Positions 10,416 through 21,706 of a stretch of DNA of 64,000 nucleotides are shown piece by piece. A program made the position numbers and the translations under genes. Source of the stretch: Cercozoa sp. M6MM (taxonomy: Eukaryota; Protista; Endomyxa: Ascetosporea). The notes below the pieces were generated by a model that saw only the letters and a list, made by a program, of their open reading frames with translations, was not told the DNA's origin and made no database searches. Location of the stretch: NCBI GenBank assembly GCA_040357565.1, contig JBDODJ010000051.1; one strand, given 5' to 3'. Within the stretch, counting starts at the first letter, position 1, and every line of letters starts with the position of its first letter.

Positions 10416-11787
<1,372 letters not shown>

Positions 11788-12623: not shown

Positions 12624-13315
12624 ATGAAATTGCTTCTCGGGATCTCGCTTCTGGGCACCGCTGCTGCTGCAGGTATCGTTGAGCTTTCGGTTTAGCCGAT
12701 CCGATGCATGTTTAACAAGGGGCTTGTTGTTCAGCAGCAGTGCCGGATTTGGCGGATTTGTTCTCACCGCAAGAACTCGCTGGCATGCGGCGTGAGCATG
12801 CAAGACTCCAGGCCGAGTTCCAAGTGCAACAGCAAGCATTCCAGGCTCAAAAGGATAACGCAATTCAAGCCTTGGATGTTAATCAAGCTTGCAAGACAGC
12901 GCTAGATTCAGCAATCGTCCCGGGTGACAGCTTGACAACTACGGTAAATTACAAAAGACCATTACTGGTGCTTACAGTTTATTGTAACATTAACTTGTGG
13001 CGTGGCTATAGTTGCAAAACGTGCAAACTGTCCTCAACAGTCCGCAGTGCACTCGAGGCGTCAACCGTGCTGAGGCAGAAATGTATGGTGCTGCCGTGGT
13101 CAATGCCGCCTTCCCGCCGCGTGCGACAGAGGCACAGGCACTGCCTCGGAGAGGTCTGCAACCTCCTCTCGGTTTTCCTCCTCCCGGTCCTCCTCCTCTC
13201 GGTCCTTCTCCTCCCGGTCCTCCTCCTCCCGGTCCTCCTACTCCCGGTCCTCCTCCTCCCGGTCCTCCTCATCGCCGAGAAGAACCTCCGCAGGTAGTGT
13301 CTGCTGTGCTGTGTG

Positions 13316-13369
<54 letters not shown>

Positions 13370-13379
13370 NNNNNNNNNN

Positions 13380-13427
<48 letters not shown>

Positions 13428-15321
13428 GCACTTGTTTTTCTGGAACAGGAACTGCTCACACCACCGAGACGTCCACCTCCAGTTCAACCCGTTGCCCCGC
13501 GAGTAGAGCGATACCCTGCCCCAACGGTTCCTTAGTTTAGCCTCTTGCATCTCCTGCCTTTAGTTTGTATCCGGTGTGTGTTGTTCTACAGGCCGTCGAG
13601 GCTGAGCCCGAGGAGGAAGCAGTCACTCCTCTATTTGCCACGGTACGCGAGTTGGAGGTACACACACTCCGGGTCTTTCCTGTGACACATGTCTCTCAAT
13701 TTGCCTACAGACGGAGGAACCTGCGACACCTGTACAGGTGACTCCTGAGCCGGAGGTACTTCCGACCTCACTCTCTGTGACTGTACTCCTCTTGAGTTCA
13801 GCTGTGTGTATGTGACTCAGAGAGAACGCGAAGAAATGCGACGACTCTTGGTTCAGAGAGAGCCAGTTCTTACGGAGCAGCAACGCCTTGGAGAGTACCA
13901 TGAACGCGCCGCCCGAAAATGGAACATCGACAGCGACCGAGCTGCCCAAACTGCCAATGCTGGCTTCAATCAGTTGCACGAACTTGCGGAACAACTTGAC
14001 CATCCAGGTCAAGAATTCCACCAGAAAATCGACACGATGATCACAGACTTCACAAAGCGACTGGACGAACTGCGGGAAAAAGTGAGAATGTCCGTGGTGG
14101 CAAATACACAACGCATGGTGGACTTTATTATCGACCAATGGACGCAAGACCTGCAGCAGTGGCAGAACGACGCTAGAACTGCTCAGGAGGCACTGTACGA
14201 AGAGTTGGAACAAGCACTTCAAGCCCAGGTAATTTGTATCACAGACTAGACCTTTGTGTCGACATCTCTGAACTCTGTTGAGACAGGAAGAACACAAGTC
14301 GGCGAGATTCCCGGTTCCTTGCTACTGTCACTTTTCGTCGACCCTGACCCAAGCCGACCCTTCTTTTTTTTTACTCTGTTGGTTCTGTAGGTTGTACGCG
14401 ACTTGGGACCTGAGTTGGTACACACAGACTCTGTCACCTTTGTAGGTGCATTCATTTCGTTGTTGACTACAGAGAGAGGGGCCGCCCGCTGGAACCGGCG
14501 CCGTCCCAGTAAGTCTCCTCTTTGAAACTGCCCACCATGAAACATGAAATGAACATGGGATTGCAGTGGGAGCCGACATCGCGTCATGCTCGTGAAACAA
14601 GACCAGCAGAATTAGTACTGTCCTTACTTCCTTCATGTTGTTACTATCACAATGTACCATCACGGTGGCTGCAGGAACGAGAACGTCTCGACCGGGAGAA
14701 ACTTGAACTCGCAGAGGACATGGCTGCATTCGATGCTCGCATGCGCACAGAGTTGGAGACACATGCAGCTCGACTCCCTGCGACACCAATTGAACAAGTG
14801 ACTCCTGAAGCCGCAGTACCCTGGCTACCTGCCGCGCCTCGAAAACCGGTACCTGCGACCTCCCTCTTTGTGACTGTGTCAGATGCAACAACTCACAACT
14901 TAGCCTCAAACAACACAACGTCCTCCCACACTCGAAGTGGTACCCATGCTAGTAAGTTTATTCTGTCGTGTATGAAATTGATTGATTGAATGTAGGGAAC
15001 ACCTGAATTCGCACCTCGTGTACTCTCAGTTTTGCTGAAGGGTGTAATTTTCAAAGAAGAGTGTCTGTTTGTGGGACTCACAGTTGAGTCTGACTCCTTC
15101 CACGATCACCACTGTACTCTAACTTACTGTGGCGTATGTCTTGACCCTACCTGCTGTCTCACAGGAAGGCGAGGTTCCTCCTGCTGCGACTGGAACCCCG
15201 ACCACAGTGAGTCTTTCTCCATCATTCGTTGTTGTGTGTTTACACCGCATTGTTTTTTGCAGGCGACTTCGACCCCCGAAAGCTCGCCTGCGTCTTTCCC
15301 CGGAGTAACTTGAGAACCATC

Positions 15322-15371
<50 letters not shown>

Positions 15372-15381
15372 NNNNNNNNNN

Positions 15382-15473
<92 letters not shown>

Positions 15474-18400
15474 GCACCAGGCGCCTTCAGCTTTTGAAAG
15501 ACTGACTGAGAGTCCGTTGCCCTCGGAAGAAGAAGAGACTTGGAAATATGAGGAAGAAGAGGTACTGCTGAACTCAAAGAACTCGATTCTACCTGACACA
15601 TTTTAAACTGGGACCGCTCAGTGGCCCGTGGAGCAAGAAGAAAGAGAACTGGCACGTGCCGAAAAAGATCAGTTGGACCTCACCTTGCGAACCTGCTATG
15701 GCGAAGTTGTCGTTGCATACGATAAAGCCAGAGCGCGCACACAGCGTGCGGTTGAAGGTCTCGCCGGCATGCCGCGTCTACTGCCTGAGGTATAATTTAC
15801 ACTCACTTTGTGGTCAGACTGTACACTTCTCTTTCTTAGGAAGAAGTTGCGCACGTTGAACAACAACTGCAACAGCTGCAGCAGCAAGTGGAACGAAGCT
15901 TTGAAGGTCTCAAACGGGAGCAAGAAGCGCAGTTATTAGACCTGCTTCGCCAAATTCAGCAAGCTCAAACCCAGGTACGATAGCTTCCTCTAACTTGACC
16001 AGTCAAACTGATCTATTTTGCGTCCTCAGGATGACACTCAACGATTGCGAGCTTTAGCTGACAACATGTGCCGTGCTGCCGAATTCAAAGTGCATCAGCT
16101 GGAAGACAACCTCCGTGCTGCTACAGAAGACTTTAGACAAAACTTGCAGCGCCTTATCGAAGCTGCTCGTCAGCGAGAGGTGCCTTTTACTCTCCAAACA
16201 AGCCATGGACATTGTATACAATTGAGCTGACTGGACAGCTTGCCGAACAAGCTGCACTGCGCCGACAGGTTGAACAGCTCCGACAAAAGCAGCTGCAAGG
16301 ACCCACTCCCGCCCGAGCCGCCGAAGAACTCGCTCGTGCCGAAGCAGAACTCGCTGCATTCGATGCAGAACAAGCGCATCGAGCAGCAGAAGCAGAGGCA
16401 ATTGAAGCAGCAGCCGTCCGCGCGGAGGAAATACAACAAGAAATGGCTAAGACCATTGCAACAGAGGCTGAAACACGAGCTGAGCTGGAGCAAGAACAAC
16501 GTCTTGCGGCTGCAACTTTTGGTCAAATTCAAGCACAACGCGGCCTTCTCGAACGTGAACAACGAGCGGAACAAGTCCAACGCAAACAGAAGCAGTTGCA
16601 GTTCCTGCTGCGACAGGAAGAAGAAAGAAAGCAAGCCGAAGAAGAACGTGCCGCACGTCTGCGTGGACTGCTACAACCTCCGACTCCTCCAGTCGCACCT
16701 CAGGCACCTGAGGCACCTGTACAATTACCATTCCTGGGGCTATTTCGGTACTTTTGCACATATAATCTAAACAGGAGCTAGCGCCTACCGGTGCACCTGT
16801 CGCTGCATACCCAACACTGGTGCGCGACGTGTCGGTACAGTCCATCAGTCCTTCGTCTGTCTTTTCTTTAAGCAGCATCGTCAGTCCTGCGTGCATTATA
16901 ATCAGGTTAAAATGGAAGAAGCAACGACACCACGTACTACTGAAGGCCCTGCCGGACCGCCTGCTGTTCCTGTGGTATTGATCCACACACAGGAGATTGT
17001 TTTGATACCGTATGTGCGTGTCAGGCCGAACCAGTGGTGCCTGCGCCTGTCGCAGAAACACCTGCAGTCCCAGCAACCGGCGTTCCATCACCCGTACTCT
17101 TTTTTTTTTTTTGTTGATGAACTTCCAGTTCAGTCGCCTGTTTGAGTGTGTCTGTGGCTGCAGGAGAAACAAGCTGAGATTGAAGACATCATGCGCCAGC
17201 TCGTGGTTAATTTTATCCTTCAACTTTCCAAAGACGAGCACTTGATGTAGGAACACGTCGCTGCACTGCCTCCCGAGCGGATCATTCACGGTCCCGAGAA
17301 GGTTCCCCCGGTCACACCTCCGACATCGAGAGCTCCTGTAGTATCCCACTTGCTGTGCACAATACCTGTCTCTCTTTCTGTCTCTTACAGTGTGTATGTG
17401 TGCCCCGGTGTGTTCTCTGAGCAGTCTCCCACAGGGGAGGTACTTTATTCTCTTGTATGCACCCCCAGCAGCTTGTTTATAAACGTGTACTTGAAAAGAG
17501 ACCCTCACATCGCTTGCCCAAACGACAAGCTGAAGCTCTGAGAGGACCTGCTGCACAAGATGAACTCCAAGAGCGACTGCGCCACGCTGAACAAGCCGCA
17601 ACGGCAGTGGGAGAAGCCGAGATTGAAGCCTTGGTATCTAAATTTTAGATGTTATTTTCTTTATTGTGTGGCGGTCTTTAAATTTACATTTGTCGCATAC
17701 AATAATATTCAGCTGCTTTATCAAAAACTACATTATTGTATATTCATTACCGTTTTTCGGCAGCAACGACAAGCAGAGCTGGAACAGCATCTGCTTCAGG
17801 TCACACTGACTGAATTGGAACGAATCAAGGCTGCAGCGGCAGCAAAAGAAGTCGAGATTCTGCCACTACTGCAGCAGCTTCCTCAGCAGGTAAGGCGTTT
17901 GGTTTCTCGGGCATTCACTACTACCCTGTGTTTCTGTGTGTTGGCAGTTTCAAGCAGTTGTTCAACAAGAACTGGACAGTCTAATTCGAGAAATCAACCA
18001 AGCTGTCGAACAACATCAAACCCAACCACTCGATCAGTTGCGCACCGAATTTGAACAGTCGCCAGAGCAGTTCGAGGCGACTGTCCAAGAAGCGATGGAA
18101 CAACTGGCGAATCTCGAGCGACGCTGTGTCCGAGCACTGGAAGAATTGAAGCAACGGGTTCTTGGCACTTTGGTAAATTCAACCTCTGAACCACAAGCTA
18201 TACGTTGAACCCACATTCGTTATTCGTTTGCAGCAAGGCGTTAAAGAACTTCGTGAACGCACTCGAAACCACAAGGCGAGAGTTCTGCAAGAACTCGAAA
18301 CGGCACTGCAAAGTCACATTGGGGGCATGAAGGCTCGCCTTACAGAACCGCAGGTCCCTTTCACTTCTTTCTCCACTGCTTGCACTTCCTTCAATTTGAG

Positions 18401-19066
18401 AGCACTGCGTATCCCGGCATGATGTTTGACTTTTTGGCAGACGGGTGCAACTCCCGAGCGGCAGGCAGCACTGGAGGCAATGCAGCAGCAGTTTGGAGAA
18501 CAGAACACTGCAATGAATCAACGCATTGAAGAAACACGTGCCATGCTCGAGCAGCGTACTGCGCAGCTGGCTGCCGAAGTACTTTGCCGACTTCACTTTG
18601 AAGCTGTTATTATTATTTGTCCGGCAGGATGAAGCTGCTGAAGTCATCCGACAACTGGAAGAACTGCACACGGAGGCGATGACTTTGATGCGAGCCCAGC
18701 ACGAAGCACTAATGAAGCTGCTCGAACCTGTACCCCGACTCTTGTGTGTGCGTGAGTGTGTGTGTGTGCGTGTGTGTGTGTGCGTGTGTGTGTGTGTGTG
18801 CGTGCGTGCGTGTGTGTCACTTGACGACGTGTCTGCATGGGTAGGAAGTGGAGGTAGAGGAAGAAGAGGAGGAAGAGGAAGAAGAGGAAGGAGAGGAGAA
18901 AGAAGAGGAAGGAGAGGAGAAAGAAGAGCCAGAGGTGCCTCCTCCGGCAGCCCCTCCGGCAGCAGCCCCTCCAGCAGCCACTCCAGCTCGCCGATGGGGC
19001 TTCACGGACCTCCCTCGAGCGGCCCTCTCGACACTGACGTTTGGCTGGGTGCGACCTCCAGCATAG
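12624..19066 (+). CDS. Large secreted protein (~1,300 aa, ~35 exons): signal peptide, GPPPP repeats, helical/coiled-coil blocks alternating with Pro/Thr-rich micro-exons, acidic tract, C-terminal ALSTLTFGWVRPPA tail
   Basis: MKLLLGISLLGTAAAA|AAVPDL... signal peptide, followed by a continuous chain of AG/GT-bounded in-frame exons to TAG at 19064-19066. No family recognised. Confidence 0.75.
13310..13426. repeat. (GT)n microsatellite in intron, contains 10-N gap
   Basis: Direct reading. Confidence 0.95.
15323..15466. repeat. (CA)n microsatellite in intron, contains 10-N gap
   Basis: Direct reading. Confidence 0.95.
18744..18818. repeat. Imperfect (GT/GC)n microsatellite in intron
   Basis: Direct reading. 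Confidence 0.9.
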
Positions 19067-19342
19067 TCGCTGAAGTCTTGATGGACACCGACATTATCGA
19101 ACACTCACATCAGTTCTTTGACATGGCGCTAAGCTGAGTAAAAAAAAAAGAAGCGCTAACACCCCACATCACATTTTAGCACACACGGACACGCACGCCC
19201 TCTTTCCGTCAAAGTAAGAGGATGATCAAAACCGCCGTTAAAAAAAAAAGAAACGCCCATTCTGGTATTTTCTGAAGCTGGAAGTGTGCTCAATCACTAC
19301 ATTCTGACAGCTGTCCACCAGCGGAGGTGTGCAGCAGCAGCC

Positions 19343-20469
19343 ATGGGTCTCGTGAGCTCTCGTCGTTTCCGTCCCGATCGGGTTGCAGACGGTTCGAGTT
19401 CCGATCAAAATCAATCGGCACATCACACCACTGCCGCTGGCAGGTGGGACTCTTTGGTCGGCAGTTGGCAGAATCCCCTAGACGCAAAGGCACCAGCTGA
19501 CTCAGATGGCGTGCTAGTGCTCGGCAGCTGCCAGTCGTAACTTGCCTTTACACAATAGGCTGAATTGAGTCAAATCACGTTTTTATCCCCCAGCGGCCGC
19601 GAGTGTTTTGTGAATCTCGTGCGGCGTCGCTCGCTGCTGCAGGCTCCATGCGAGCTGCCTCCGTCGCCAGTGTGTGGTAGAACACAGCTACATTCACAGA
19701 CCGTACCCGAAGCAGTACGTCTTTTGTACAGCCGTGGAAACGCCGCGAGTCGAGCTTGAGTCGCACGAACTGCCCAGTTTGGGGTACAGCAAAAACAGTA
19801 CACGTGAACAGCGTGCCCATTTTGTGAGTGTTTAGTGGGTTCTTTGCGCACGCTCGCATCCCTGAAGAAGTAGTCCGCAACACTGCCAGTTGCGGCGTCG
19901 TTTTCACGGTAGAGCTCGAGCGAAAGAAAAACTGGTGCAGAAATTGATTGGCGGATTTTGGATTTGCAGATCGACTCAGCAGCAGCGATGAAGTGCAATC
20001 GAAATTCGCCGCGAAACGTAGCACAATTGCGAGCTCAGATGATAGAGTTTGCGCGCAGTGACGCTGCTGCCAGGGTGCCCATCGTTGTGGCACTTTTCAA
20101 CGCCTACCCAAACGAGCGAAAGGCCTTGAAGTTTGCATGCCAAGAACTGTACAATTGTACCACTGTTCTCAAGCTGCTTTGTAACAGAGTTTTTGATGTG
20201 CAGTAAGCTCTCTGCGTTGGCGAAACGAGTGTGTGCACCTTTACTTTGCCTCGTCATCCGCGAGTCGGAAAATGTAGCCACGTGCCTGTTGAAAACGAGT
20301 TTGAATTCCCCTTAATCTTGTCTGCATGCAGGTCGCTAAACAGTTCGATTTTACCTCACGCCGAAGCTCTGCCGAAAGTGTTCGCCGAGCAGTGTCGTGG
20401 TTGCAGGTACAGTCGTGGCTTTTAGTGTAATTTAGTTTAACATCACAGGGACTTCACGGCAATAAATAG
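19343..20469 (+). CDS. Arf/Arl-like small GTPase-fold protein with degenerate G motifs (stop at 20469 or 20504 depending on last acceptor)
   Basis: MGLVSS (myristoylation-type start), VLVLGSCQS|GRECFVNLV (G1 position), VELESHELPSLG|G (G3 position), GVVFT|IDSA, RVPIVVALFNAY (G4 position), QEL|KLSALAKR, SVRRAVSWLQ (Arf C-terminal helix). Order and spacing match the Arf family. Confidence 0.55.
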
Positions 20470-21071
20470 AACCCCTTAAGGCGATTTCGGTCGTCCTACG
20501 ATGACTTTAGCGATATCCTGCGCGACTGGTTGCACCAGCAGCAAAGCGACTCGGACACTGAAACTGACAAAAAAAGCCGATTCAGCGCCAAACTTGACGT
20601 CGTGCTGTCGCTAGTGGCGGATTTTGCTGAAGGCGAAGCGTCGCAGTTCTGCCAGTTTCGTCACGACGGTACAATGCGTTTCTCGACATTATCCGCGCAG
20701 ACGAGGCACCGACACGCGTTTGCCGTCGCTGTTGGTGCCGAGGATTACTAATCAGTTGCCCTCGTTTCAGAATCTGGCCGGATTGGCGTACTGTAGGGCC
20801 GTGAGTCTGGCAAAAATGCTTCTCCTTTAAACTGAATGCACTCAATGCACGGCAGCGCGTGTGCAAGCGACGGGTTTTAAGCTTTGAAATTGAATGATTA
20901 AAACTCTGGTTTAGATTACTTCCCAGTATTCGCATAAATTTCTGTGTGAAAACAGCATCCACGCACTTGTACGCTGAGGCACGCTGAGACAAGGTACAGA
21001 CAGTGTCGATTGCCAAACGAGACTTTGCTTCAGCCGGGTTGCGTTAAATTTGCAGAGCACGAAGAAACCCG

Positions 21072-21706
21072 ATGAAAATACATGTGTTGCTTGCGCTAAT
21101 GAGCGTCGCGGTGGTGAGAGTAGGCGCTGCTGACGAAGAGCAGGTGAGAGTAGGCGCTGTCACTCCAGCCGAATCGGACACCGCTCCATTTCGCGCCCCA
21201 AGCCCAACGACGGTACAAAATACAGTCTGGCCTTGATACTTTAAGACCTAACTTGTACTGCCAATACGTATTGTAGTCCTCCGAGGTGGGCACGAGTACT
21301 ACGTACGTCGGACTGGAAAAGGAAGAGCGTCCACTGAAATCGGCCCTAAAGCCCATACAAACAGATATGGTACAGCCTGTAGAGTGCTTTCCCGACATAC
21401 TGTATACTGTAAACCTCTAACTGTATTTCTCCCACTGGCGTACAACAGCCTGCGGAAGCACGACAGCAGAAGAAGAGCGTTCGCTTCCAGTTGCAGCCAG
21501 AGACGGCCGCGTCGCAAACCGCTGAAACTAAACCCCGGTCCGAACCAGAGGCGCAAGGCGTCAGCGCGCATACTCCAGCTCAAGCAGTCGAGGAGGCTGA
21601 GGAAACTCCGAGTCCCGCGCCGGCGTTGAGTTGGCGAGAATACGGCCAACGCGCGCTGTCGAGCATAACGTTTGGCTGGGTGCCTCCACCGCGCGCACTA
21701 GTGTAG
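21072..21706 (+). CDS. Small secreted protein (3 exons, ~160 aa) with KSALK and KKSVRF motifs and C-terminal ALSSITFGWVPPP tail
   Basis: MKIHVLLALMSVAVVRVGAA signal peptide. Exons join in phase 0: ...APSPTT|SSEVG...LKSALKPIQTDM|PAEARQQKKSVRFQLQP...RALSSITFGWVPPPRALV*. Confidence 0.75.

Follow-up and report, generated by a model that had tools for sequence, protein, structure and literature searches.

The DNA analysed here is a 64,000-nucleotide stretch of contig JBDODJ010000051.1 (C51; assembly GCA_040357565.1) from Cercozoa sp. M6MM, hereafter the window, in which two neighbouring genes, a large one modelled at 12624-19066 and a small one at 21072-21706, encode proteins that end in nearly the same short peptide. 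The last exons of both genes terminate in ALS[TS][LI]TFGWV(x)PP, which we call the tail. The organism, at present named Lemnamoeba sinaloensis (Apofilosa, Rhizaria), is an amphizoic amoeba whose strain M6MM originated from fish gills; its draft assembly comprises 2244 scaffolds and 23.67 Mb, with contigs that end at simple-sequence repeats (SSRs), and its introns have a mean length of 82 nt and number about 13 per gene (PMC11069148, PMC13746701). An initial annotation of the window, made without database searches, had taken the tail for a portable last-exon module that serves otherwise dissimilar secreted proteins as a sorting, anchoring or translocation signal. Our genome scans covered all 23.6 Mb (2235 contigs) with degenerate DNA patterns, each set against a reversed-pattern control, while protein searches and structure predictions used single exons or reading frames together with the public models P0001 (MHM6MM_002423, 154 aa, the small gene), P0002 (MHM6MM_002419, 725 aa) and P0003 (the paralogue on contig C560). 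Further paralogous sequences lie on contigs C825 (L004), C1501 (L032) and C189 (L033).

The open frame of the large gene at 18848-19066 ends in ...RAALSTLTFGWVRPPA-stop and that of the small gene at 21491-21706 in ...QRALSSITFGWVPPPRALV-stop (Table 1). Inside both tails lies the same 16-mer, ACGTTTGGCTGGGTGC, which occurs exactly twice in the window and for which none of 100 dinucleotide shuffles had two matches. A local nucleotide alignment of one last exon with the other scored 36, compared with 19 +/- 2 and a maximum of 27 for shuffled sequences; it spans about 40 nt and also takes in CCTCCA by way of a one-codon gap. Chance similarity of the tails is ruled out by these two results, and the likeness is homology. 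The initial annotation was thus correct in placing two tails with 16 identical nt at these sites, and the acidic stretch followed by a Pro/Ala linker that it described ahead of each tail can be read directly in both last exons. Both genes, in addition, encode a Trp about 15 residues upstream of the tail, and the protein likeness extends up to a PA..W element. The tail is about 85% identical in nucleotides between the two genes and the remainder of the last exons is not alignable; the residues after the motif are also unlike, RPPA in the large protein and PPPRALV in the small one.

Table 1. Positions of the features of the two tail-bearing genes in the window
Feature	Position	Strand	Basis or remark
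Signal-peptide-like first exon of the upstream gene model, MKLLLGISLLGTAAAA	12624..12672	+	Read directly; hydropathy maximum KD9 2.43; the paralogous C560 exon heads P0003
Coiled-coil exons of the large gene, with a paralogous copy on C189	17762..18729	+	blastn, exon-by-exon protein alignments and own-genome protein matches
Last intron of the large gene, 115 nt, with a (GT)n repeat	18730..18844	+	GTA donor and TAG acceptor; donor position and acceptor the same in C189
Last exon of the large gene: acidic run, Pro/Ala linker, RRW, tail, TAG	18845..19066	+	Sequence read
Tail copy 1, AALSTLTFGWVRPPA-stop	19022..19066	+	16-nt identity at 19037-19052 inside
Box in the 3' untranslated region (3'UTR), GAACACTC...AGTTCT	19099..19117	+	Closer form common to the C189, C825 and C1501 copies
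Small gene exon 1, signal-peptide-like start MKIHVLLALMSVAVV	21072..21212	+	Homologous to exon 1 of the C189 gene; E = 4e-5, 65% identity
Small gene exon 2 (SSEVG...)	21277..21369	+	Counterpart visible in C189
Small gene exon 3 (last exon): disordered, acidic, Pro/Ala, tail, TAG	21449..21706	+	P0001 ends in the tail
Tail copy 2, QRALSSITFGWVPPPRALV-stop	21653..21706	+	16-nt identity at 21668-21683 inside

Throughout the 23.6 Mb, the intact tail occurs only at the two C51 genes, and three decayed paralogous remnants lie on C825, C189 and C1501. The patterns LSxxTFGWV and TFGWVxPP each returned the known pair and no control match (2 versus 0), and the looser patterns stayed at the level of their controls, with 4 versus 4 for TFGWV, 6 versus 4 for FGWxxPP and 12 versus 13 for LSxxTFGxV. 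When the context of every extra pattern match was read, no linker, LS, PP or other feature of the tail was seen, except at C825; a three-sequence profile run over the genome picked out both C51 copies and C825, along with one weak Pro/Ala match, and DNA searches of the genome with each last exon found nothing beyond C825. The initial annotation had itself named a lack of further bearers as a result that would refute its proposal, and this is essentially what the whole-genome scans show, no other intact copy having been found.

The relationship between the two genes becomes visible through the gene on C189. Its exon 1 (MKLLALLALMSIAAM...) and exon 2 match exons 1-2 of the small gene, with 70% nucleotide identity over 290 nt between C189 145-434 and window 21022-21267, beginning 50 nt 5' of the ATG; its six further exons, the boundaries of its last intron, its last exon and its 3'UTR box match the large gene from 17647 on, and C189 692-1608 aligns with window 17760-18732 at 71% over 1008 nt overall (blastn) and at 82-88% within exons. 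C189 thus has exons other than the tail in common with both genes, and the last-intron positions and 3'UTR box in common with the large one; these comparisons indicate that the small and large genes are one paralogous family, linked by a chimeric member. Because the C189 gene joins small-gene exons 1-2 to the 3' part of the large gene, the tail is best explained as common by descent. The bodies of the two proteins, which had been described as unalike, are so in direct pairwise comparison, but the C189 paralogue links them both. The chimeric gene spans L033 145-1820 and looks like a product of exon-block shuffling between paralogues.

The remaining paralogous copies are partial. C825 carries a copy of the whole last exon of the large gene and of the adjoining 3' end of the intron; 93% of the nucleotides are identical, and the tail of this copy reads TFGAV...RPR-stop, with the Trp lost. 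On C1501 a copy of the penultimate exon (90%) contains an in-frame TGA, and beyond an SSR and a gap a barely recognisable remnant of the tail adjoins a 26-nt 3'UTR box with the same sequence as the one on C825. The last exon on C189 has a premature TAG in the acidic run and then continues in frame to ...SRLTFGRIL-stop, again with the Trp lost. C560 holds a paralogue of the 5' part (P0003), in which an almost unchanged signal-peptide exon is accompanied by polyproline and by the 147-aa exon in two copies. The 3'UTR box, CACTC[GA]AACTAGTTCT, stands just 3' of the stop at L004 584-609, L032 1170-1195 (minus strand) and L033 about 1823-1838; genome-wide it is found only at family 3' ends (3 matches at <=1 mismatch versus 1 in the control), and a role in 3'-end processing or in regulation is possible.

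Searches beyond this genome were negative. The last-exon frame of the small gene, compared with 5.8 billion proteins, matched solely its own NCBI entry (MHM6MM_002423); the tail region of the large gene had no match among proteins of 40-128 aa, nor had the penultimate exon among proteins of 112-355 aa. A HMMER search of 1.84 billion representatives with the 147-aa exon returned two proteins of the same organism and one weak repeat protein, which we take to be spurious. In Pfam the tail exons, P0001, P0002 and P0003 all fell below the family cut-off, the ESM Atlas gave no relative and a full-text literature search for the tail motif returned nothing, in agreement with the initial statement that no described motif resembles it. 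With no relative found elsewhere among billions of proteins, the family is apparently an orphan, small, fast-evolving and restricted to L. sinaloensis.

These results bear directly on the proposal that the tail is a portable signal by which secreted cargo is sorted, anchored or translocated through its C-terminus, and that it marks a secreted or effector family, by analogy with the C-terminal vacuolar sorting determinants (ctVSDs) of plants. The signal-peptide-like starts of both bearers, the placing of the tail behind a flexible linker, at the free C-terminus or close to it, and the movement of 3' exon blocks among family members are in keeping with such a signal; we nevertheless regard it as improbable, since no other bearer exists in the genome, no relatives were found elsewhere in protein searches, the two bearers are paralogues rather than unrelated proteins, the post-motif residues differ and the signal peptide of the large gene is insecurely joined to the tail. 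A proteome-wide family of C-terminal sorting signals would have many unrelated bearers, which were not found, and the tail is not a proteome-wide signal. Nor is there support for the suggestion that it defines a secreted or effector family, given that only two paralogues bear it and that the loose patterns match at control level; the accompanying suggestion of extrusome cargo was likewise abandoned, as was an apicomplexan context, the organism being a rhizarian amoeba. Both intact tails are C-terminal and belong to models with signal-peptide-like starts, an association that comprises two cases, which are paralogues, and in which the exon chain of the large gene is putative.

Known classes of C-terminal signal fit the tail poorly in several respects. 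Hydropathy plots of the two tails give a longest uncharged run free of Pro of 10-11 residues and a maximum KD19 of 0.32-0.51. A glycosylphosphatidylinositol (GPI)-anchor signal was rejected because this run falls short of the roughly 12-20 residues required to the end of the protein and because the proteins end in RPPA and PPPRALV; a tail anchor or transmembrane helix, of about 18-22 residues near the C-terminus, is ruled out by the same run length and by KD19 <=0.51, and K/HDEL-type endoplasmic reticulum retention and SKL-type peroxisomal (PTS1) signals are ruled out by the endings ...RPPA and ...RALV. The arrangement does recall GPI-anchored proteins in its N-terminal signal peptide, Ser/Pro/Ala-rich linker and hydrophobic C-terminal end, but here the hydrophobic run is too short and too polar and is followed by Arg/Pro-rich residues. 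The ctVSDs of plants, such as those of barley lectin, tobacco chitinase and phaseolin, have no sequence consensus, need exposure at the very end of the protein and occur on many unrelated cargo proteins. The tail is similar to them as a short hydrophobic/aromatic C-terminal peptide on signal-peptide proteins, placed after a flexible region; it differs in having a fixed sequence on two paralogues with unlike end residues.

The reading frame of the tail in the large gene is set by its last intron. The GTA donor, after ...EP, and the TAG acceptor are both in phase 0, and phase-0 splicing leads from the penultimate exon (18628-18729, the last of the coiled-coil exons) into the Glu-rich frame of the last exon, which ends in the tail; the positions of both sites are identical in C189, and this match between C51 and C189 supports the tail frame. 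We consider it highly improbable that one of the tails is untranslated, an artefact of frame or gene model in which the conserved nucleotides would be 3'UTR or an RNA element. The Glu-rich frame of C189 does hold its premature TAG while another frame stays open, and in the window an alternative frame runs without a stop from the penultimate exon across the (GT)n intron as far as 19137, but the tail frame is what the conserved splicing yields, P0001, the small gene's public model, has the tail as its C-terminus and the residues that differ within the motif are conservative replacements.

The 5' continuation of the large gene is a different matter. P0002 runs from the exon at 13806 to a TAG at 17249 and thereby splits the gene of about 1,300 aa, which was the initial annotation's own model. 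This TAG also forms the final codon of what would be an in-frame intron of 45 nt (17205-17249) with an unusual GTT donor, and continuation of the large gene to 19066 hinges on that single junction; if the TAG is real, the tail-bearing 3' gene would start near 17457 and would lack a signal peptide. Because the public annotation splits the large gene, the join of the 12624 exon to the tail is insecure and is treated here as putative. The claim of N-terminal signal peptides on both proteins therefore stands in part: both models open with signal-peptide-like exons, but that of the large gene is not securely connected with the tail, P0002 ending at 17249. In the small gene, P0001 begins at an internal Met, and the signal peptide requires the ATG at 21072; translation from this ATG would give a classical-looking signal peptide, and the start is supported by the homologous C189 exon. 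The small gene looks like a member of the family without the coiled-coil body. Its exon 1 contains a 17-nt direct repeat, GGTGAGAGTAGGCGCTG, at 21113-21129 and 21143-21159 (30 nt apart), which is translated as VRVGA both times and has no counterpart in the C189 paralogue; either copy of the repeat includes a GTGAGA donor-like site. More generally, the public draft gene models at this locus are broken up where SSR gaps or weak splice sites occur.

The evidence on constraint of the tail is mixed. Where the small and large genes differ within the motif, the substitutions are silent or exchange similar residues (T/S, L/I), and among the copies without Trp, signs of decay are seen in the TAG of C189 and the TGA of C1501. 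Between the large gene and C189 (17936-18711 versus L033 879-1581), amino-acid identity is 62-74% and 74 of the 83 identical residues (~89%) use the same codon; the ratio of nonsynonymous to synonymous substitution (dN/dS) is near or above 1, which would imply that evolution is very relaxed or diversifying, or else that the C189 copy is dead. With about 89% of codons retained among identical residues, the nucleotide identity of the tails can be accounted for without selection or gene conversion. The idea that gene conversion must have caused the 16-nt identity was rejected for the same reason; the P of ~0.008 for identical codons assumed saturated synonymous sites and is discounted in view of this codon retention.

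A functionless tail, alike in the two genes through duplication or local gene conversion (the genes are 2.6 kb apart) and too recent to have decayed, would account for part of these data. Synonymous divergence is low (74/83 codons kept), so that nucleotide identity by itself calls for no selection; the Trp is gone in three other copies; the substitutions between C51 and C825 look neutral; and by eye the likeness seems to pass the stop codon (TAGTC.CTG in both genes), the scored alignment ending before the stop. Such a neutral relic is nonetheless rather unlikely in our estimate, because the tail is about 85% identical while the other last-exon sequence of the two genes cannot be aligned, because, of the changes in the first five tail codons, two are synonymous and two conservative, the pattern that purifying selection would leave in an older duplicate, and because the copies that have lost the Trp are those with signs of pseudogenisation.

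Taken together, we consider it probable (about 0.65) that the tail is a homologous last-exon piece inherited within one small paralogous family restricted to L. sinaloensis. The genes of this family are intron-rich and, as modelled, encode a signal-peptide-like start, a coiled-coil or disordered body, an acidic run, a Pro/Ala linker and the tail; exon blocks have been duplicated and recombined between loci, for example in the C189 gene, and an intact ...LSxxTFGWV(x)PP is kept only in the two neighbouring genes of C51. In these features the family resembles the lineage-specific, fast-evolving secreted repeat-protein families of protists, tandem or dispersed, which are likewise orphans with signal-peptide-like starts and low-complexity or coiled-coil bodies, and which likewise show exon-block shuffling, pseudogenised copies and dN/dS near 1; it differs in being very small, with about two intact tail-bearing genes plus fragments. 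On present evidence the tail is a family-specific C-terminal peptide and does not constitute a new class of sorting signal.

Within this family-specific inheritance, the tail may have been kept on the two neighbouring genes as a docking motif. When the small protein was folded with AlphaFold2 without an alignment, pLDDT was about 82 at residues 128-150 and 50-60 elsewhere; the locally ordered part consists of a helix, WREYGQRAL, followed by an extended SSITFGWVPPP, and the remaining chain is disordered, so that in this model the tail appears to be the only ordered part of the protein. It is a tentative possibility that the retained tail serves as a short linear peptide for docking, placed at the C-terminus of proteins that are disordered elsewhere; the aromatic TFGWV would come after an upstream Trp and a short helix, and a Pro cap would close the peptide. 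The large protein and the body-less small protein would then bind the same partner, which could be a lumenal receptor, the cell coat or each other. A more specific version, in which an undescribed docking or sorting peptide attaches the coiled-coil protein to a receptor or the cell coat and the small protein acts at the same site as a soluble competitor or cap, is distinctly less likely and remains speculative. The tail resembles the short linear motifs and molecular recognition features of disordered proteins in comprising about 15-25 locally ordered residues (a helix plus an aromatic core) that are kept while their flanks drift; in contrast to those, two intact copies underlie its conservation, and it falls into no catalogued motif class.

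Several points weigh against a maintained, functional tail. The case for constraint is weakened by the dN/dS near or above 1 in the family, and the last-exon differences between C51 and C825, which number 6, 6 and 7 over the three codon positions, are clustered in the tail. With two intact copies, the "conserved motif" is a single pairwise comparison. AlphaFold2 assigns no confident structure to the tail of the large gene, and the exon chain and last-exon frame of that gene rest on splice-site logic and on conservation among paralogues.

The main value of this analysis is corrective, in that what seemed to be a portable signal on unrelated proteins is better read as the product of ordinary paralogy, in an orphan family that evolves fast and has had its exon blocks reshuffled between SSR-rich loci. 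To our knowledge, the cell biology of the Apofilosa is almost wholly undescribed, and if the tail does bind a partner, it would open a small, experimentally accessible way into protein secretion or the assembly of the cell coat in this group.

Some further observations concern the surroundings of the family genes. Long (GT)n/(CA)n repeats and N gaps lie in their introns (window 13311-13430, 15323-15467 and 18743-18817) and also at contig ends (L004 1-76 and both ends of L032), the latter in agreement with the published breakage of the draft assembly at SSRs; these repeats are open in all frames and give rise to long spurious open reading frames. An actin gene, split by introns, lies directly upstream of the large gene at 10466-11787 of the window. 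On the minus strand of L004, an open frame at 1639-1911 converges on the last-exon copy, and its acidic end, ...DDEDDFGLVD..., resembles the C-terminal motif of the ribosomal P-stalk.

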